The notes beneath the pieces were generated by a model. That model made no database searches, was not told the origin of the DNA, and was given only the letters and a program-made list of their open reading frames with translations. A stretch of 38,272 nucleotides of DNA from Dimorphilus gyrociliatus (lineage: Eukaryota > Animalia > Annelida): contig CAJFCJ010000121.1 of the NCBI GenBank assembly GCA_904063045.1, positions 1 through 38,272 of the forward strand. Reading direction: 5' to 3'. Both the position numbers and the translations under genes were made by a program. Of this stretch, positions 11,065 through 38,272 are shown in pieces (the first letter of the stretch is position 1; each line of letters starts with the position of its first letter).

Positions 11065-11554
11065 ATTCTTTTAATTTTAATTCAAGTTCTAATACCAAAA
11101 ACCTAAAAACCAGAAAAATTTGCAATCAGAGTAGTTACCTCAGAACAAGATTACTACCCAGTTTGCACCCTACAACTCTACAATACAATTTTTGCTATAA
11201 TACCTAAACTTAAAATTAATTTGTTTTAATTAAAAAACCCTTTGATCAACATGGAATAGTTTTCCCATACAGGATCAAAATTCATGTTGTCATACCTAAA
11301 CCTTAAATATATTTTTTAACAATTAAACCTTTTTTAAAATTTATAAATCAGCCTAAATACAAAAGCCTAATATACCAGAAAAACATTGCTAAAAGAGTAG
11401 TCACCCCAAAAAAGGATTAAAACCCAGTTTGCTAACAACCTTATATAGCCTAATTTAAAAGAAATTGAAGAAATTTTTTGAGCATTTTCTATTTTCTTCC
11501 TTCTTACATCTCCTAACTGTAAATATACTTTTAAAAGATAATGATACTTGAAAC

Positions 11555-16640: not shown

Positions 16641-17371
16641 ATCCTTTTTATTTTTCAACCTAGCTTGCCTTGAAGTTTAGTGCATTTTCCTTCTAAAATT
16701 CATTATAAAAATTATTATGTTTTAAATAGGATATATTGAATTGATATAATGAATATATTTCTAAACAGTAATTTCAATTTTCTATTGCATTGAACTCTTA
16801 CAGTAAGTTCTCATACACAGACTTTGTTAGATTATCAGTTTTCTCACAGTTTACTAATTTCATGCTGTCACATATCTGTTAGCATTATATAATTTTATCT
16901 AAGCTGGATTAGCTTGTGGCATGTTCCCACAGGATTTTCCATGTGTCTTATATATAAGGTGAATATGTTTTCACAGAAATCATTTATAGTTTGAAGATTA
17001 AGGAGTCAGCATCACATTAAAAATAGCTGGTCTTATGAACAGCTTCTACAATTCCTTTCAAAATATACATCCTTCAATGATAGAATGGTATGTAGATATG
17101 TCATTAAACAGGAAAGTGTGTTATATATATTTGGAATGTTTTATTCACATGGTTCATATTTAGTTTGAAGAAGGAGTCAAAATCACATTTAAAATACCCA
17201 ATTAAATGAACATCCCCTACAATTGCTGATGATATTAAAATGGTATGTACAAATTCTGATATACAGTATCATAATACATAGCACTTTCAATATGATATAT
17301 ATTAAAAAAAGACCTGAAGAAGTGAATTCCCTATTGGAATCCTTCAACCTCTCTGTAGGTGTAGGTTAATA

Positions 17372-17428
17372 GACCCTGATGAGTCCTTGGTCATAAAAAT
17401 AGAGAGGAGGACAAAACCATGGTAGGTC
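17372..17428 (+). ncRNA. Type I hammerhead ribozyme with a core mutation (GAAA to AAAA)
   Basis: GACC CTGATGA GTCC..GGAC AAAA CCATGG TA GGTC; identical to 36737-36793 except for the core G to A change. Confidence 0.8.
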
Positions 17429-19538
17429 AAGTTGGTAGGAAAAAAATTTAAGAAAAAAATTTTTTCTGTTGGAAATTGTTTTAAATGTCGATTTTGGTGT
17501 ATTTTTTCTTTGACTGCTTCCCAAAATCAACTGGGACTCTTGAAATGTGAGAATCCTGTTTCTCTTTTTTGATTTAGTCAAAAAAAAACCCTTTGCAAAC
17601 CCCAACAAGTAAAGAGAATGTGGAATGAGAGGAACTAATACATAAACCTTAATCAATGACTAAAACAAAACTTTTTCCATAAGATTGACTTTTTTCAATT
17701 CAAAATTAAATTTTTTGACTTTAGCTTTCAAAATTTTTTCTTTTTACTTTAAAAAAGGGATAAAGATTCTTAAATATGTACCTGTGGTGTAATTAACATT
17801 TTTGGTAAATTGCTAGAGTTTGTTGTGTTGATAATGTCTTGCTGTTAAAACCAAATGATGAAATTCTTTAGAGTCAGTATACACTTATGGTGATTTTAAA
17901 TTTCTGATGGTAGTAGTAATATATCTTTGTACATTTTTGATTACTTTTGTAAAAGCTTGTATAGTTTTGTACATTTTTGTATTTTTTAAAATATTGCTTA
18001 AAATAAGTTGTTGATGTTTTTATCATGGTGATTTTAAATTTTCTCATGGTTTTAGCTTGAGTATGAGTTTTTGCTTGAGTATGAGTTTTAGCCTGAGTTT
18101 GAGTTTGTTTTTTAGTTTGATTGTGAGTTTAAATTAAAATTTGAGTTTAATTTGTGTATTAAACTGGTTTTAATTTGATGTAAATATGGTTAGTAGTTTA
18201 CAGATTTTTTTTGTGATCTTTATAAAGGTTTCTATATTCTTCCCAAATCTTTTACATTTCTAATATTTATAAAAATCCCCTATTGTAGTATATTGTAGAG
18301 AACATTTTAAATATTCTCAGTAACTAACCTTTATTCTTAAGCTAAAATTAAAAAAATACTTTTCTTATCAATCTACTTCCAGTATAAACACCACCATATT
18401 TGACATTAAAACATTTCACCAATTTTAATATCACTCACTTCAAAAACTCACATATATTCTCTTAATTTTTTCCAATCCATTCATTAGCCAAAACAATGAA
18501 TCATAACTGGCTCAAACAAATGAATGTTGGAAAAGACTCTTTCAACTACCAATACCATAAATTGTAATCTTAATTCACTACATGGAATAATCCTTCCATT
18601 CCAGTAACAAACATAAATCATAAATCAATAAAGGAATTAGGAACCTCTCTATTCAGCATACAAAACACTCTTCCCAATCCATTCATTAGCCAAATCAAAC
18701 TATCTGGAATTAACTAAATGAATGTTGGCAAGAAACTTTTACACACAAAAACAGATTACCTAAGGCTTTCACACATTTACTTACAAATGATTTATTTAAC
18801 CCACTTTCCAATCCATTCATTAGCCAGAACAACCTATCACTTGGCAAAGTAAATGAATGTTGGAAAATACAATACAAGAAAAACAGGTTAGTCTTCAAAC
18901 AATATTATTTAATAATTTGCAAATTAACAATCCTCTAATCTTTAGCCATAAAATTAAATTAACCATACTTTCTACATAATACAACATATGTATCACACTT
19001 CATTCATTTACACTCACTTATTTTATATACTTTCAATTAATTAACCAATTCCTTTACACATACTTAATTCATCAACTAGCCATAAATAATAATACAATTC
19101 ATACTTTTATTTTTTCACTTTTTCAATTTTGAATTTTTACTTTTATTAAAACTTTTATTGTTATTCCATTCCTGGTTGCTACTATTTACCCAACTTATTT
19201 TATTTTATTCTATATCACTTTTCTTATTTTTTAGGTCTGCAATTTTTGTTTTTTCTGTCTTTGCTGTTTTTCCAAACTGTCAGTATATATATCCCCTCAA
19301 TTTACTGTTATTTATTCCTTACACTCTGATTCAAGTCCATAGATGCTTTCTTTAATAACTTGTTAATTTAAAAAGTTTTAAACTATTTTGGTCTCTTATT
19401 TTAATTTTTAATTATTTTTTAATTTAATTCCAAATTTTACTCCACAAGAATCTTTATCAACAAACAAATAAATAAATCAAAAATCTAGAGAGAAACTTCT
19501 TATAAGATTCTCAAACCTCTCTGTCATGTAGCTCAGTA

Positions 19539-19599
19539 GACCCTGAAGAGTCCCAGGTTTAAAAATTTAGTAGAGAGGGGGACGAAACCAAGGTAGGTC
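19539..19599 (+). ncRNA. Type I hammerhead ribozyme (intact core)
   Basis: GACC CTGAAGA GTCCC..GGGAC GAAA CCAAGG TA GGTC; predicted cleavage after GUA at 19595. Confidence 0.88.
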
Positions 19600-19920
19600 A
19601 AGTAGGTAGGAAAAAAATTTAAGAAAAAAATTTTTTCTGTTGGAAATTGTTTTAAATGTCAATTTTGGTGTATTTTTTCTTTGACTGCTTCCCAAAATCA
19701 ACTGGGACTCTTGAAATGTGAGAATCCTGTTTCTCTTTTTTGATTTAGTCAAAAAAAACCCTTTGCTAACCCTAACCATTTATACATTTATAATACAACA
19801 AAGTACAAATACTTGCATAATTCATTTTATTAAATTTTTCAAAATTTTATTGTATTTCAGTGCACAAAAGAAAGCAATCGTTTTAGCACATTAGTATGAA
19901 ATGTTATCTTAGCCTCATTG

Positions 19921-23542: not shown

Positions 23543-24165
23543 AGGGTTAGAGTTAGGTCTTGGGGTTAGGGATTAGCACAATCAGTACAGACTGGTAATC
23601 CCAAAAGTGCACACACACTTATAACCCTACTCAGCCAATAACTAGCCCTATTAATTTTCATTCACTGTCAATTTCTCTCTGTATCTCCAATAGGAGATAA
23701 AAAACTACTATCCTGATCATCCCCCACCCAGCTATTGGCCATGGTGAGAATTGTGTCATTGCTGTTGTCCAGGCTCTCTATGTTATTCACAATAGAGAAT
23801 TTGTTTTGTGGTTTATTGAAGACTGTTTTAATATGCCACCATGGGGATGGCCAACATTCTAATAGATTCAGAGTGTTGGTATTGTCCTCTTGAGGTGGAC
23901 CTTCAGTTCTTCCCTTTACTATAAGGCTACCCAATGATATCCCCAGTTTCAAGGCAATAATAGGCCTAATCGCTTTCAGTGGACTGTCATCATTAAGAGC
24001 ACTCCAGTGGTCCTTAAGTATTCTATTTACTTTATACCAAGGACTTGGATGGTAGACCACTAGTGGTACTATAGTAGTACTGTAGCAACCATGATCCTCA
24101 TTTAAGCCATAAGGAGTAACTGTATTAGCCTCTTTGATGTACCTTGCTTCCAAAGTCTGTAGGGT
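23543..24165 (-). mobile_element. 3' fragment of a Penelope-like element (GIY-YIG end, 3' UTR, telomere-complementary tail)
   Basis: LQTLEARYIKEANTVTPYGLN is a PLE GIY-YIG C-terminal motif, followed by PLVVYHP..ILKDHWSAL..PIIALKLGISLGSLIV. The tail is CCCTAACCCCAAGACCTAACTCTAACCCT at 23543-23571. Confidence 0.72.
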
Positions 24166-31350: not shown

Positions 31351-31830
31351 AGTAACAGGAATTCAGTCATGAATCAACCCTCTTAGTGAACAGGTCAAGT
31401 ATTACTTAAGGATACAGTTATATTATTCTTACAATTTGGTTCTATATCCCTCCCCCTTCAATTCTACATCTCTCTTCTAAGTGGCTTACCTGTACTTACC
31501 TACAACCCCACAGCAGGAAAGTACAATCCCATTAAAAGTTATTTGATAATACTTTGTTTGGAGTTTTTAAGACAATTTTATTTTTTTCACTCTACCAAAT
31601 GCATGACAATATTAGTTGTGATGAGTAGAGAAGTTGCTAAGTGAAATAGGTTGTAGCTTGATTTTAGATTGAAAAATGTTTAAAAAGAATAATTATTATT
31701 AGAAAAGTTAGAGTTGTTAAAAGTTAAATTCCTTCAAAAATGAGTAATTAAAAAACTCATTAACTTTATTAAATTAACTCTATAAGCAGTCCTGATGATC
31801 AACTGTCTAAGGATTAAGTAAGTATACTAG

Positions 31831-33701
31831 AAGTCATCTTCCTGGGCATCATCTCTATAGCAGTCATCTTCCTGGGGATCATCTCTATAGCAGTCATGTT
31901 CCTGGGGATCATCTCTATAGCAGTCATGTTCCTGGGGATCATATCCACAAAAGTCATCTTCCTGGGGATCATATTCACAAAAGTCATCTTCCTGGAGATC
32001 ATCTCTATAGCAGTCATCTTCCTGGGGATCATCTCTATAGCAGTCATGTTCCTGGGGATCATCTCTATAGCAGTCATGTTCCTGGGGATCATATCCACAA
32101 AAGTCATCTTCCTGGGGATCATATCCACAAAAGTCATCTTCCTGGAGATCATCTCTATAGCAGTCATCTTCCTGGGGATCATCTCTATAGCAGTCATGTT
32201 CCTGGGGATCATCTCTATAGCAGTCATGTTCCTGGGGATCATATCCACAAAAGTCATCTTCCTGGGGATCATATTCACAAAAGTCATCTTCCTGGAGATC
32301 ATCTCTATAGCAGTCATCTTCCTGGGGATCATCTCTATAGCAGTCATGTTCCTGGGGATCATCTCTATAGCAGTCATGTTCCTGGGGATCATATCCACAA
32401 AAGTCATCTTCCTGGGGATCATATCCACAAAAGTCATCTTCCTGGAGATCATCTCTATAGCAGTCATCTTCCTGGGGATCATCTCTATAGCAGTCATGTT
32501 CCTGGGGATCATCTCTATAGCAGTCATGTTCCTGGGGATCATATCCACAAAAGTCATCTTCCTGGGGATCATATCCACAAAAGTCATCTTCCTGGAGATC
32601 ATCTCTATAGCAGTCATCTTCCTGGGGATCATCTCTATAGCAGTCATGTTCCTGGGGATCATCTCTATAGCAGTCATGTTCCTGGGGATCATATCCACAA
32701 AAGTCATCTTCCTGGGGATCATATCCACAAAAGTCATCTTCCTGGAGATCATCTCTATAGCAGTCATCTTCCTGGGGATCATCTCTATAGCAGTCATGTT
32801 CCTGGGGATCATCTCTATAGCAGTCATGTTCCTGGGGATCATATCCACAAAAGTCATCTTCCTGGGGATCATATTCACAAAAGTCATCTTCCTGGGGATC
32901 ATATCCACAAAAGTCATCTTCCTGGGAATCATCTCTATAGCAGTCATCTTCCTGGGGATCATATCCACAAAAGTCATCTTCCTGGGGATCATATCCACAA
33001 AAGTCATCTTCCTGGAGATCATCTCTATAGCAGTCATCTTCCTGGGGATCATCTCTATAGCAGTCATGTTCCTGGGGATCATCTCTATAGCAGTCATGTT
33101 CCTGGGGATCATATCCACAAAAGTCATCTTCCTGGGGATCATATTCACAAAAGTCATCTTCCTGGAGATCATCTCTATAGCAGTCATCTTCCTGGGGATC
33201 ATCTCTATAGCAGTCATGTTCCTGGGGATCATCTCTATAGCAGTCATGTTCCTGGGGATCATATCCACAAAAGTCATCTTCCTGGGGATCATATCCACAA
33301 AAGTCATCTTCCTGGAGATCATCTCTATAGCAGTCATCTTCCTGGGGATCATCTCTATAGCAGTCATGTTCCTGGGGATCATCTCTATAGCAGTCATGTT
33401 CCTGGGGATCATATCCACAAAAGTCATCTTCCTGGGGATCATATCCACAAAAGTCATCTTCCTGGAGATCATCTCTATAGCAGTCATCTTCCTGGGGATC
33501 ATCTCTATAGCAGTCATGTTCCTGGGGATCATCTCTATAGCAGTCATGTTCCTGGGGATCATATCCACAAAAGTCATCTTCCTGGGGATCATATTCACAA
33601 AAGTCATCTTCCTGGAGATCATCTCTATAGCAGTCATCTTCCTGGGGATCATCTCTATAGCAGTCATGTTCCTGGGGATCATCTCTATAGCAGTCATGTT
33701 C
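31831..33701. repeat. 30-bp minisatellite with a 150-bp higher-order repeat
   Basis: Units ATCTCTATAGCAGTCAT(C/G)TTCCTGGGGATC and ATAT(C/T)CACAAAAGTCATCTTCCTGG(G/A)GATC in a 3+2 pattern, about 62 units, ending at the N. Confidence 0.95.
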
Positions 33702-33702
33702 N
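33702..33702. other. Assembly gap or ambiguous base
   Basis: A single n sits at an abrupt change of sequence type. Confidence 0.8.
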
Positions 33703-34313
33703 GGGTTAGGTCTTGGGGTTAGGGTTTTAACGCCCTAGAGTAGCACTCTCACTTTCTCCGTGAGTGATACCCTTGGAAGGTTGCGTTCCACATTGAAGAA
33801 TAACTATTCTGAATGACGGCAGGTTAATCTCTTAAGAACTGGGACCCTGAATTGTCAATTAGACGTGATACAAGGACCGTTCCTCCGATTACGGGAACCG
33901 GATGAGATACACCCGCTCAACTCAGAAAATCGCATCCAATAAAGGAAAAATAAGGACTTTCGGTTTCGAGCATGGTGCATTGCGGGATTCGAACCCACGT
34001 CTCCTGATTACATGTCAGTTATGTTACCACTACACCAAATACCTCCATGACGAACCTACCATCCAGATCTTCCTTATAGGATTTGTCTTTGGCGTCTTAA
34101 CCAAGTAATCATTTCTTAATGATTATCAAGCAGATAATTATTCGACAGAGAACCTCAGAGCCTTCCAAGTCTTTCACCCCTGAAGATAGGATCTGGCAGG
34201 GTTAGGTCTTGGGGTTAGGGTTTTAACGCCCTAGAGTAGCACTCTCACTTTCTCCGTGAGTGATACCCTTGGAAGGTTGCGTTCCACATTGAAGAATAAC
34301 TATTCTGAATGAC
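33703..34313 (-). mobile_element. tRNA-containing SINE-like unit with a telomere-complementary 3' tail (one 496-bp unit plus a 115-bp partial copy)
   Basis: 33703-33817 is repeated at 34199-34313. On the minus strand both copies end in AAAACCCTAACCCCAAGACCTAACCC. CpG is retained. Confidence 0.6.
33973..34043 (-). pseudogene. tRNA-like sequence (Pol III A and B boxes)
   Basis: GGTATTTGGTGTAGTGGTAACATAACTGACATGTAATCAGGAGACGTGGGTTCGAATCCCGCAATGCACCA. D, anticodon and T arms fold, the acceptor stem is 5/7, and the loop CATGTAA lacks U33. Confidence 0.7.
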
Positions 34314-34494
34314 AGGGTTAGGTTTGCAAAGGGTTTTTTTTTTGACTAAATCAAAAAAGAGAAACAGGATTCTCACATTTCAAGAGTCCCAGTTGATTTT
34401 GGGAAGCAGTCAAAGAAAAAATACACCAAAATCGACATTTAAAACAATTTCCAACAGAAAAAATTTTTTTCTTAAATTTTTTTCCTACCTACTT

Positions 34495-34555
34495 GACCTA
34501 CCATGGTTTCGTCCCCCTCTCTACTAAATTTTTAAACCTGGGACTCTTCAGGGTC
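34495..34555 (-). ncRNA. Type I hammerhead ribozyme (intact)
   Basis: GACC CTGAAGA GTCCC..GGGAC GAAA CCATGG TA GGTC on the minus strand. Confidence 0.9.
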
Positions 34556-36736
34556 TACTAAGCTGCATGAAAGAGAGGTTTGAGAATCTTAATAAGAAGT
34601 TTCTCTCCAGATTTTTGATTTATTTATTTGTTTGTTGATAAAGATTCTTGTGGGGTAAAATTTGGAAATTAAATTGAAAAAAAATTAAAAAATTAAAATA
34701 AGAGACCAAAATAGTTTAAAACTTTTTAAATTAACAAGTTATTAAAGAAAGCATCTATGGACTTGAATCAAAGTGTAAGGAATAAATAACAGTAAATTGA
34801 GGGGATATATATACTGGCAGTTTGGAAAAACAGCAAAGACAGAAAAAACAAAAATTGCAGACCTAAAAAATAAGAAAAGTGATATAGAATAAAATAAAAT
34901 AAGATAAAATAAAATAAAATAAGTTGGGTAAATAGTAGCAACCAGGATTGGAATAACAATAAAAGTTTAAATAAAAGTAAAAATTCAAAATTGAAAGAGT
35001 GAAAAAAATAAAAGTATGAATTGTATTATTATTTATGGCTAGTTGATGAATTAAGTATGTGTAAAGGAATTGGTTAATTAATTGAAAGTATATGAAATAG
35101 GTGAGTGTAAATGAATGAAGTGTGATACATATGTTGTATTATGTAGAAAGTATGGTTAATTTAATTTTATGGCTAAAGATTAGAGGATTGTTAATTTGAA
35201 AATTATTAAATAATATTGTTTGAAGACTAAACTGTTTTTCTTGTATTATATTTTCCAACATTCCTTTACTTTGCCAAGTGATAGGTTGTTCTGGCTAATG
35301 AATGGATTGGAAAGTGGGTTAAATAAATTATTTGTAAGTAAATGTGTGAAAGCCTTAGGTAATCTGTTTTTGTTTGTAAAAGTTTCTTGCCAACATTCAT
35401 TTAGTTAATTCCAGATAGTTTGATTTGGCTAATGAATGGATTGGGAAGAGTGTTTTGTATGCTGAATAGAGAGGTTTAATTCCTAATTCCTTTATTGATT
35501 TATGATTAATGTTTGTTACTGGAATGGAAGGATTATTCCATGTAGTGAATTAAGGTTACAATTTATGGTATTAGTAGTTGAAAGAGTCTTTTTCCAACAT
35601 TCATTTGTTTGAGCCAGTTATGATTCATTGTTTTGGCTAATGAATGGATTGGAAAAAAAATTAAGAGAATATATGTGAGTTTTTGAAGTGAGTGATATTA
35701 AAATTGGTGAAATGTTTTAATGTAAAATATGGTGGTGTTTATACTGGAAGTAGATTGATAAGTAAAGTATTTTTTTAAATTTCAGCTTAAGGACAAAGGT
35801 TAGTTACTGAGAATATTTAAAATGTTCGCTACAAACTATATATTCAACCTAATAAAAATATACTACAATAGGGGATTTTTATAAATTTTAGAATTGTAAA
35901 AGATTTGGGAAGAATATAGAAACATTTATAAAGATCACAAAGAAATATGTAAACTACTAACCATATTTACATCAAATTAAAACCAGTTTAATACACAAAT
36001 TAAACTCAAATTTTAATTTAAACTTACAATCAAACTAAAAAACAAACTCAAACTCAGGTTAAAACTCATACTCAAGCAAAAACTCATACTCAAGCTAAAA
36101 CAATGAGAAAATTTAAAATCACCATGATAAAAACATCAACAACTTATTTTAAGCAATATTTTAAAAAAATACAAAAATGTACAAAACTATACAAGCTTTT
36201 ACAAAAGTAATCAAAAAAGTACAAAGATATATTACTACTACCATCAGAAATTTAAAATCACCATAAGTGTATACTGACTCTAAAGAATTTCATCATTTGG
36301 TTTTAACAGCAAGACATTATCAACACAACAAACTCTAGCAATTTACCAAAAATGTTAATTACACCACAGGTACATATTTAAGAATCTTTATCCCTTTTTT
36401 AAAGTAAAAAGAAAAAATTTTGAAAGCTAAAGTCAAAAAATTTAATTTTGAATTGAAAAAAGTCAATCTTATGGAAAAAGTTTTGTTTTTAGTCATTGAT
36501 TAAGGTTTATGTATTAGTTCCTCTCATTCCACATTCTCTTTACTTGTTGGGGTTTGCAAAGGGTTTTTTTTTGACTAAATCAAAAAAGAGAAACAGGATT
36601 CTCACATTTCAAGAGTCCCAGTTGATTTTGGGAAGCAGTCAAAGAAAAAATACACCAAAATCGACATTTAAAACAATTTCCAACAGAAAAAATTTTTTCA
36701 AAAAATTTTTTTCTTAAATTTTTTTCCTACCTACTT

Positions 36737-36793
36737 GACCTACCATGGTTTCGTCCTCCTCTCTATTTTTATGACCAAGGACTCATCAGGGTC
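36737..36793 (-). ncRNA. Type I hammerhead ribozyme (intact)
   Basis: GACC CTGATGA GTCC..GGAC GAAA CCATGG TA GGTC on the minus strand. Confidence 0.9.
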
Positions 36794-37487
36794 TATTAAC
36801 CTACACCTACAGAGAGGTTGAAGGATTCCAATAGGGAATTCACTTCTTCAGGTTTTTTTTTAATATATATCATATTGAAAGTGCTATGTATTATGATACT
36901 GTATATCAGAATTTGTACATACCATTTTAAAATCATCAGCAATTGTAGGGGATGTTCATTTAACTGGGTATTTTAAATGTGATTTTGACTCCTTATTCTT
37001 CAAACTAAATATGAACCATGTGAATAAAACATTCAAAATATATATAACACACTTTCCTGTTCAATGACATATCTACATACCATTATATCATTGAAGGATG
37101 TATATTTTGAAAGGAATTGTAGAAGTTGTTCATAAGACCAGCTATTTTTAAGGTGATGTTGACTCCTTAATCTTCAAACTATAAATGATTTCTGTGAAAA
37201 AAACATTTATAATATATATAAGACACATGGAAAATCCTGTGGGAACATGCCATAAGCTAATCTGGCCTAGATAAAATTATATAACACCAATGTGGAAACA
37301 TGAAGTTAGTTAGTAAACTTTAAAATCACTGATAATCAAATTAAATCTGAGTGTGAGAAAGTTCTACAAACATGTTAAAGAGAGATAAGAGTTTGTTGTA
37401 ACTTGATATCAGCATTATAGTATTAGTGTATGTACTGAATTTCAAATCTCTATCTTAATTAACAACAATTAGTCAATAAACTGCAGT

Positions 37488-38272
37488 TTGGGTTAGGTTA
37501 GGGGTTAGGGTTAGGTTTAGGGTTAGGGTTAGGGTTAGGGTTAGGGTTAGGGTTAGGGTTAGGGTTAGGGTTAGGGTTAGGGTTAGGGTTAGGGTTTAGG
37601 GTTAGGTTAGGTTAGGGTTAGGTTAGGGTTAGGTTAGGGTTAGGTTAGGGTTAGGTTAGGTTAGGGTTAGGGTTAGGTTAGGGTTAGGTTAGGGTTAGGG
37701 TTAGGTTAGGGTTAGGGTTAGGTTAGGGTTAGGGTTAGGTTAGGGTTAGGGTTAGGTTAGGGTTAGGGTTAGGTTAGGGTTAGGTTAGGGTTAGGGTTAG
37801 GTTAGGGTTAGGGTTAGGGTTAGGTTAGGGTTAGGGTTAGGGTTAGGTTAGGGTTAGGGTTAGGTTAGGGTTAGGTTAGGGTTAGGTTAGGGTTAGGGTT
37901 AGGTTAGGGTTAGGTTAGGGTTAGGGTTAGGGTTAGGTTAGGGTTAGGGTTAGGTTAGGGTTAGGGTTAGGGTTAGGGTTAGGTTAGGGTTAGGGTTAGG
38001 GTTAGGTTAGGGTTAGGGTTAGGGTTAGGGTTAGGGTTAGGGTTAGGTTAGGGTTAGGGTTAGGGTTAGGGTTAGGTTAGGGTTAGGGTTAGGGTTAGGG
38101 TTAGGGTTAGGGTTAGGGTTAGGTTAGGGTTAGGGTTAGGGTTAGGGTTAGGTTAGGGTTAGGGTTAGGGTTAGGGTTAGGGTTAGGGTTAGGGTTAGGG
38201 TTAGGTTAGGGTTAGGGTTAGGGTTAGGGTTAGGGTTAGGGTTAGGGTTAGGGTTAGGGTTAGGGTTAGGTT
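37488..38272 (+). repeat. Telomeric repeat array, mixed TTAGGG/TTAGG
   Basis: A continuous G-strand array runs to the end of the window. Confidence 0.97.

Follow-up and report, generated by a model that had tools for sequence, protein, structure and literature searches.

Our analysis indicates that the stretch at 33703-34313 probably harbours a low-copy, non-coding and non-autonomous retroelement of 341-496 nt, which depends on the tail of a Penelope-like element (PLE) and is copied in trans by the PLE sharing that tail. The tail in common, the absence of further resemblance to the PLE, the varied and capped 5' ends, the unrelated flanks and the orientation are all observed in the genome. The window, i.e., the whole stretch of DNA analysed (38,272 nt), is the entire contig C121 of the 77.9-Mb, 349-contig assembly of Dimorphilus gyrociliatus. 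The published description of this genome makes no mention of Penelope elements, SINEs or telomeres (PMC7854359).

An earlier note on this DNA had treated 33703-34313 as one unit. The stretch was found instead to comprise a 496-nt non-coding unit, hereafter family A, and a 115-nt partial copy arranged head-to-tail, amounting to 1.23 copies:

33703-34198, minus strand: longest copy of family A, 496 nt, reading in the sense direction leader, tRNA-like module, body and tail
34046-34198, minus strand: leader, upstream of the tRNA-like module and single-copy in the genome
34199-34313, minus strand: second copy, 5'-truncated, 115 nt, 100% identical to 33703-33817

In sense order the long copy consists of a leader of 153-155 nt, the tRNA-like module, a body of ~250 nt and a 20-mer followed by CC(C), while the truncated copy adjoins it on its sense-upstream side. 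The resulting partial tandem is compatible with a pLTR-like structure, and as a single instance it is equally compatible with successive terminal additions. The unit contains no ORF longer than 68 aa and no reverse transcriptase (RT) ORF. Its folding energy was -156.4 kcal/mol vs. -133.5 +/- 5.9 for shuffles (z -3.9). Cofolding of the leader with the 3' half of the body yielded a gain of -22.6 kcal/mol vs. -10.3 +/- 3.3 for mononucleotide shuffles (z -3.7), and a rod-like fold in which these two parts pair is predicted. When the body was compared by word-size-7 blastn with the entire window and with two PLE loci, no similarity to the PLE was seen past the tail.

A retrozyme reading of the unit was also considered and rejected. 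No Rfam hammerhead match was obtained in 33500-34500 at E values up to 5, and a motif script found no CUGANGA...GAAA core with helix II on either strand of the circularised unit. The same script was positive elsewhere, detecting hammerheads both in element E next to the unit and in a satellite of 675-bp units. Since it has no hammerhead, the unit is not a retrozyme.

The tail is the feature that connects the unit to the PLE. The 20-mer GTTAGGTCTTGGGGTTAGGG was found exactly at 23552, 33705 and 34201, always on the plus strand, and thus all three sites listed in the earlier note are present; allowing up to 2 mismatches added no further site in the window, and 100 shuffles gave 0. The respective features are the following:

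33705-33724, minus strand: 20-mer that forms the 3' tail of the long copy, CCCTAACCCCAAGACCTAAC in the sense direction, holding two telomere-complementary blocks
34201-34220, minus strand: 3' tail 20-mer of the truncated copy, exact match
23552-24160, minus strand: PLE fragment (family B), internally deleted, with the C-terminal end of the ORF joined to the last 75 nt
23552-23571, minus strand: 20-mer that forms the 3' end of the family B fragment

The RNA of the unit, whose sense strand is the minus strand of the window, ends in CCCUAACCCCAAGACCUAACCC, which contains two blocks able to pair with the G strand (TTAGGG) and is identical to the 3' end of the PLE encoding RT and GIY-YIG domains. 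As had been claimed, the tail is shared between unit and PLE: alignment gives identity over the last 23-25 nt, and blastn with word size 7 detects nothing else in common between families A and B. A genome-wide search for the 20-mer returned 52 perfect matches, and 97 matches when up to 2 mismatches were allowed, compared with 0 for the reversed control. At least three families with no other resemblance to each other terminate in it at their 3' ends, namely A (the unit), B (the PLE) and C. In the 40 of ~97 tail sites that were read, it always lies at the same end of its family's body, and the DNA beyond it differs at nearly every site. Some sites consist of the tail only with a cap-like CTAA in front, which is what extreme 5' truncation would leave. 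Given that three unrelated RNAs share nothing but this tail of 23-25 nt, the tail may suffice for template use and priming, and RTs of more than one family could make use of it in D. gyrociliatus.

Two minor observations concern the tail sites. Very often CCTG(A) or CTAACC follows the 20-mer, whatever comes after; judged from these sites, the tail may be a few bases longer, or certain target or joining sequences may be favoured. In family C, two tails face each other ~880 nt apart with identical sequence past each tail, and such inverted pairs are located at two loci (C40:83801-84718 and C42:31834-32752).

Concerning the PLE itself, the 20-mer at 23552 is indeed, as proposed earlier, the 3' end of a GIY-YIG PLE fragment, and fuller relatives encode both RVT_1 and GIY-YIG. 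A fuller family B copy carries a 620-aa ORF with both domains, the latter a predicted endonuclease domain with a Pfam match of E 2.4e-7. In 5 copies the tail is constantly found 1858-1860 nt past the match to the ORF end. Family B is the commonest bearer of the tail, its last 75 nt being matched at 25 sites or more, and it yields internally deleted derivatives such as the one at 23552-24160. No hammerhead adjoining the tail was found in either family A or family B.

In the whole genome, family A amounts to ~6 young insertions of independent origin and 3 old ones. The junction of body and tail occurs in exact form 7 times, a copy number far below that usual for SINEs. The family is small and probably recent. 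The young copies start at different positions of the unit:

window, long copy: unit position 1
C227: unit position 155
C53:107922 and C80: unit position 304
C53:88783: unit position 323
C93: unit position 358
window, partial copy: unit position 382
C114: unit position 401

These copies are 98.5-100% identical to each other, and all of them reach the common 3' end except C53:88783, in which the last 35 nt including the tail have been removed by deletion. The unit is therefore neither single-copy nor a plain tandem, two possibilities that the earlier note had raised against itself, as there are ~6 young and 3 old insertions and the young copies have varied 5' ends. The note had also proposed a check for junctions at telomeric repeats; 5' truncation proved variable, and CCCTAA-type repeats were found at the 5' ends of four copies. 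Past the tail, the flanks differ between copies. The C227 and C93 copies reside in non-telomeric DNA, the former alone in AT-rich unique sequence, and no convincing target-site duplication was found at these two interstitial copies. The three old copies (76-88% identity) have tails of the same design with substitutions. A PLE subfamily with the variant tail CCCTAACACCAAAATCTAAC was considered as a co-varying partner and rejected, as only two of the old copies have this variant and no surviving PLE carries it; hence no co-varying PLE partner is shown.

Some of these copies are related by duplication. Those at C53:107922 and C80 match without a difference across 2856 nt, and C53:88783 shares with them a tail-side flank of 1.45 kb at 99.6% identity vs. 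only 79% on the other side. As read from these flanks, the three copies (segmentally duplicated loci C80:1718-4910, C53:106422-109277 and C53:87283-90421) are one insertion spread by segmental duplication, so that ~6 independent young events remain. The pattern suggests a chromosome-end duplication followed by erosion and re-capping.

A different explanation of the whole family would be that the 20-mer is a subtelomeric variant repeat and that the unit owes its spread to segmental duplication, or to recombination of one chromosome end with another, and not to reverse transcription. The clustering of copies on small repeat-rich contigs, the duplicates on C53 and C80 with their 1.4-2.9 kb of common flank and the existence of tail-only instances agree with it. 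However, the 20-mer is missing, even at up to 2 mismatches, from the 785-bp terminal telomere array, and it always ends three unrelated bodies on the same side with unrelated DNA beyond. It is therefore not merely a variant telomere repeat, although the earlier note had allowed for this. In addition, the 3' ends of the copies coincide while the 5' ends differ, and the C227 copy is solitary in AT-rich unique DNA. We thus regard spread by duplication alone as very improbable. The combination of a shared 3' end, variable 5' cuts and CCCTAA caps supports instead a non-autonomous element copied in trans by a PLE.

The position of the unit on the contig was also taken into account:

31828-33701, no strand assigned: 30-bp minisatellite, 62.5 copies with a 150-bp higher-order period, directly adjacent to the unit's tail
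34314-34322, plus strand: AGGGTTAGG, joining the truncated copy to element E, which is stacked next to it, as read from the sequence
about 34317-37284, minus strand: element E, ~3 kb, without long ORFs, between the unit and the telomere
37486-38270, plus strand: (GTTAGG)n terminal array, 785 bp, at the contig end

Because the contig ends in (GTTAGG)n, its plus strand is the telomeric G strand heading to the chromosome end. The order from the unit towards the tip is the AGGGTTAGG junction, the 3-kb hammerhead-bearing element E and the telomere. The AGGGTTAGG at 34314-34322 is either a telomere-type cap or else element E's own tail. In the window, the unit's sense strand coincides with the C strand and its 3' tail faces into the contig, away from the (GTTAGG)n array, as priming on the G strand predicts. 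Family A combines reverse-complement telomeric repeats at the 3' end, telomere-capped 5' truncations and a 3' end directed away from the tip.

Based on these data, we infer that this particular PLE mobilises the unit in trans and that priming occurs through annealing of the tail. According to this mechanism, the RT of the PLE would act in trans on the unit RNA, whose tail would pair with the 3' end of a G strand, provided by a chromosome end, a nick or a break, and so prime cDNA synthesis. The end of the cDNA, often incomplete or later eroded, would then receive telomerase repeats, and the addition of more elements would produce the co-oriented stack at the end of the contig.

Several features of the surrounding DNA were recorded as well. 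Base 33703, at the junction of unit and minisatellite, is N, and for this reason the junction is only partly readable. The minisatellite is stop-free on both strands and thus imitates ORFs of 608 and 627 aa. Element E has its own, different tail (an A-run, then CCCTTTGCAAACCTAACCC) and internal repeats; a second copy lies inverted at 16885-19764, ~15 kb further inside the contig. PLE-type hammerhead cores of element E start at ~34551 and ~36789 on the minus strand and at 19543 on the plus strand, and a fourth core in the window starts at ~20615 on the minus strand. MULE/FLYWCH ORFs are also present in the contig. A scan for promoters and terminators gave no matches with the models used, which are bacterial while the host is an animal.

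The second distinctive component of the unit is the tRNA-like module. ARAGORN called a single tRNA-like gene in the whole window, and the elements relevant to transcription by RNA polymerase III (Pol III) are the following:

33973-34045, minus strand: tRNA-like module, degenerate and Thr-UGU-like (ARAGORN, Rfam tRNA)
34037-34027, minus strand: A box, 10/11 of the consensus
33995-33985, minus strand: B box, perfect (11/11)
33946-33950, minus strand: T5 run, 22 nt past the module in the sense direction
33929-33926, minus strand: T4 run, ~20 nt past the T5 run

The earlier note's observation of a tRNA-like sequence with A and B boxes on the minus strand is borne out by ARAGORN, Rfam and the box matches. 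The module scores 43 bits with the Rfam tRNA model (cut-off 29) vs. 62-75 bits for the 63 host tRNAs listed. In its acceptor stem the two outermost pairs (1-72 and 2-71) are mismatched, its anticodon stem has one non-canonical pair, and its position 33 is A instead of U. U at this position of tRNAs is universal. A search for a host tRNA source by blast and with 30-mers (up to 3 mismatches) matched the two element copies only, and scanning of 45 other loci, mostly tail-bearing, revealed no further tRNA-like sequence, so that the module is found in only 2 copies genome-wide. An origin by template switching from a mature, CCA-ended tRNA was rejected, as the register of the acceptor stem leaves no CCA after the discriminator.

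These features bear on whether the unit could be a genuine Pol III SINE, transcribed from tRNA +1 through to the tail and then mobilised by the PLE. Such a view would account for the well-matched A and B boxes, for a module that is tRNA-derived yet as degenerate as SINE heads are, for the 3' tail common to unit and PLE, and for the start of the C227 copy at tRNA +1. However, the T5 and T4 runs, which are the same in both tRNA-bearing copies (window and C227), look like Pol III terminators. Animal Pol III normally stops at such runs. The terminator-free body expected of a SINE2 is therefore absent here, and a module occurring in just 2 genomic copies also speaks against a SINE. Furthermore, the longest copy reaches 153-155 nt upstream of the module, between it and the upstream tail, with a leader that pairs with the body, so that the tRNA does not form the 5' end of the window copy and the description of the unit as tRNA-headed is doubtful. 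Only the C227 copy begins at the tRNA; the longest copy begins upstream of it, and the other copies are truncated.

Even the C227 boundary may have a different cause. This copy starts at +1 to +4 of the tRNA, with +1 as called by ARAGORN and Rfam, and its 5' junction consists of a repeat in G orientation, GGGTTAGGGTT, abutting AGG, which overlaps the first AGG of the tRNA. The GGGTTAGGGTT preceding this interstitial copy (C227 ~11463-11478) has the G-strand orientation, opposite to the CCCTAA caps elsewhere. Owing to the overlap, microhomology could have set the boundary: it could reflect AGG-mediated joining to repeats that a telomerase-type activity had added at a break made by an endonuclease, and not the 5' end of an RNA. 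Taking both sides into account, we find a genuine Pol III SINE unlikely. Of the earlier proposal of a Pol III SINE mobilised by a PLE, the retroelement sharing its tail with a PLE stands, while the Pol III-driven and tRNA-headed part is doubtful in view of the T runs, the 2 module copies and the leader. As part of the reading that we consider probable, the module is a captured and decayed tRNA sequence inside the element. Pol III transcription of the full length from this module is improbable, and the RNAs that serve as templates more likely originate upstream, in the leader or through read-through.

Position 1 is only a provisional 5' end of the unit, since the tail-to-leader junction would look the same in a telomere-capped truncated copy. 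This leads to another explanation, in which the unit is the 3' portion, or a chimeric product of template switching or transduction, of a longer PLE-type element that is missing from the assembly and picked up a tRNA gene and its terminator from genomic DNA. A 5' end that cannot be fixed is compatible with this, a tRNA with a T5 run close by resembles a gene that has kept its own terminator, the PLE family produces internally deleted derivatives (e.g., the fragment in the window), and foreign inserts are known in PLEs (PMC3846280). On the other hand, the 77.9 Mb contain no longer copy and the leader is single-copy, the body is unlike the PLE past the tail, the old diverged copies retain the combination of body and tail, and no close host counterpart of the module was found. 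A longer parent element thus appears quite unlikely to us.

A final alternative, which we put forward only tentatively, is that the unit is a tRNA-bearing, SINE-like partner of the PLE with a functional module, and that the short telomere-complementary tail alone is enough for recognition and priming by the PLE RT. In this case the tRNA-like domain would be located at the tip of a rod-like RNA and could act as a Pol III promoter, or as an RNase P-type processing site fixing the 5' end of the RNA at tRNA +1. The module would then have the role that hammerhead ribozymes are thought to have in other PLEs and in retrozymes.

A number of known systems resemble the non-autonomous element that we favour. 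The non-autonomous Chlamys elements of Chlamydomonas (MRC1 and others) share 3' ends with autonomous ones and insert head-to-tail, partial head-to-tail tandems being the usual form of PLE insertion (PMC8557442). Like the unit, the MRC1 type is short, lacks an RT, resembles its autonomous element at the 3' end only and forms head-to-tail partial tandems. In contrast to it, the unit belongs to an animal, shares only a telomere-complementary tail of 23-25 nt, carries a tRNA-like module and is stacked at a chromosome end. The non-LTR retrozymes of animals, hammerhead-bearing tandem units, have been proposed as PLE passengers (bioRxiv 10.64898/2026.07.22.740005), and hammerhead-bearing units of this type also occur in the D. 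gyrociliatus genome. They are similar to the unit in being small, non-coding, structured, tandem and presumably carried by PLEs, whereas the unit has no hammerhead core on either strand, just 1.23 tandem copies and a defined 3' tail.

With regard to telomeres, Athena and Coprina are endonuclease-lacking PLEs attached to telomeres via reverse-complement telomeric repeats with adjacent hammerheads (PMC8557442), and telomere attachment also characterises the rotifer Terminons (PMC8557442; PMC3846280). All three parallel the unit in their reverse-complement telomeric repeats at the 3' end, telomere-capped 5' truncations, a 3' end away from the tip and stacking. Unlike the Athena type, the autonomous element sharing the unit's tail has a predicted GIY-YIG domain, hammerheads do not adjoin the tail in family A or B, and the unit encodes nothing. 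Compared with a tRNA-derived SINE2 and its stringent-type LINE, the unit similarly has a tRNA module with boxes, an unrelated body and the tail of an autonomous retroelement; it differs in having a PLE and not a LINE as partner, in its internal T5 and T4 runs, in a module that is not the 5' end of the longest copy and in a copy number of about ten vs. thousands. In Adineta vaga, Penelope moves unrelated host sequences flanked by pLTRs in trans (PMC3846280). This cargo is likewise unrelated sequence moved by PLE machinery via terminal cis sequences, with a whole pLTR on both sides as the cis signal, while the unit has a short 3' tail only.

Trans-mobilisation by PLEs and non-autonomous partners with common 3' ends are hence documented (PMC3846280; PMC8557442). 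The earlier note was aware of no well-described SINE-PLE partnership, and in the literature searched by full text we found no account of a PLE partnered by a tRNA-derived SINE. However, non-autonomous PLE partners are already known (retrozymes, MRC1 and the A. vaga cargo), and for this reason only the tRNA-bearing form would be new.

As it stands, family A is a small family of interest mainly to transposon specialists. The RTs of PLEs are the closest retroelement relatives of telomerase, and their choice of template is poorly understood. The shared tail offers natural evidence that a telomere-complementary tail may suffice for a PLE enzyme. If the module were functional, as a promoter or as a processing signal, the parasitism of the SINE/LINE type would be extended to the Penelope class, and a new building block would be added to chromosome-end stacks in an animal with normal TTAGGG telomeres.

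Finally, two further PLE regions of the genome were noted. At C59:124600-129700, eight tandem 675-bp units lie directly upstream of the 620-aa ORF with RT and GIY-YIG domains, each with a canonical hammerhead core (CTGATGA, a 6-bp helix II and GAAA); this tandem is a retrozyme-like satellite next to a PLE. At C53:40501-41772, a 423-aa ORF with an OTU cysteine-protease domain is located upstream of a GIY-YIG-bearing ORF in another PLE region and, judging by its position, may be an extra ORF of that PLE.
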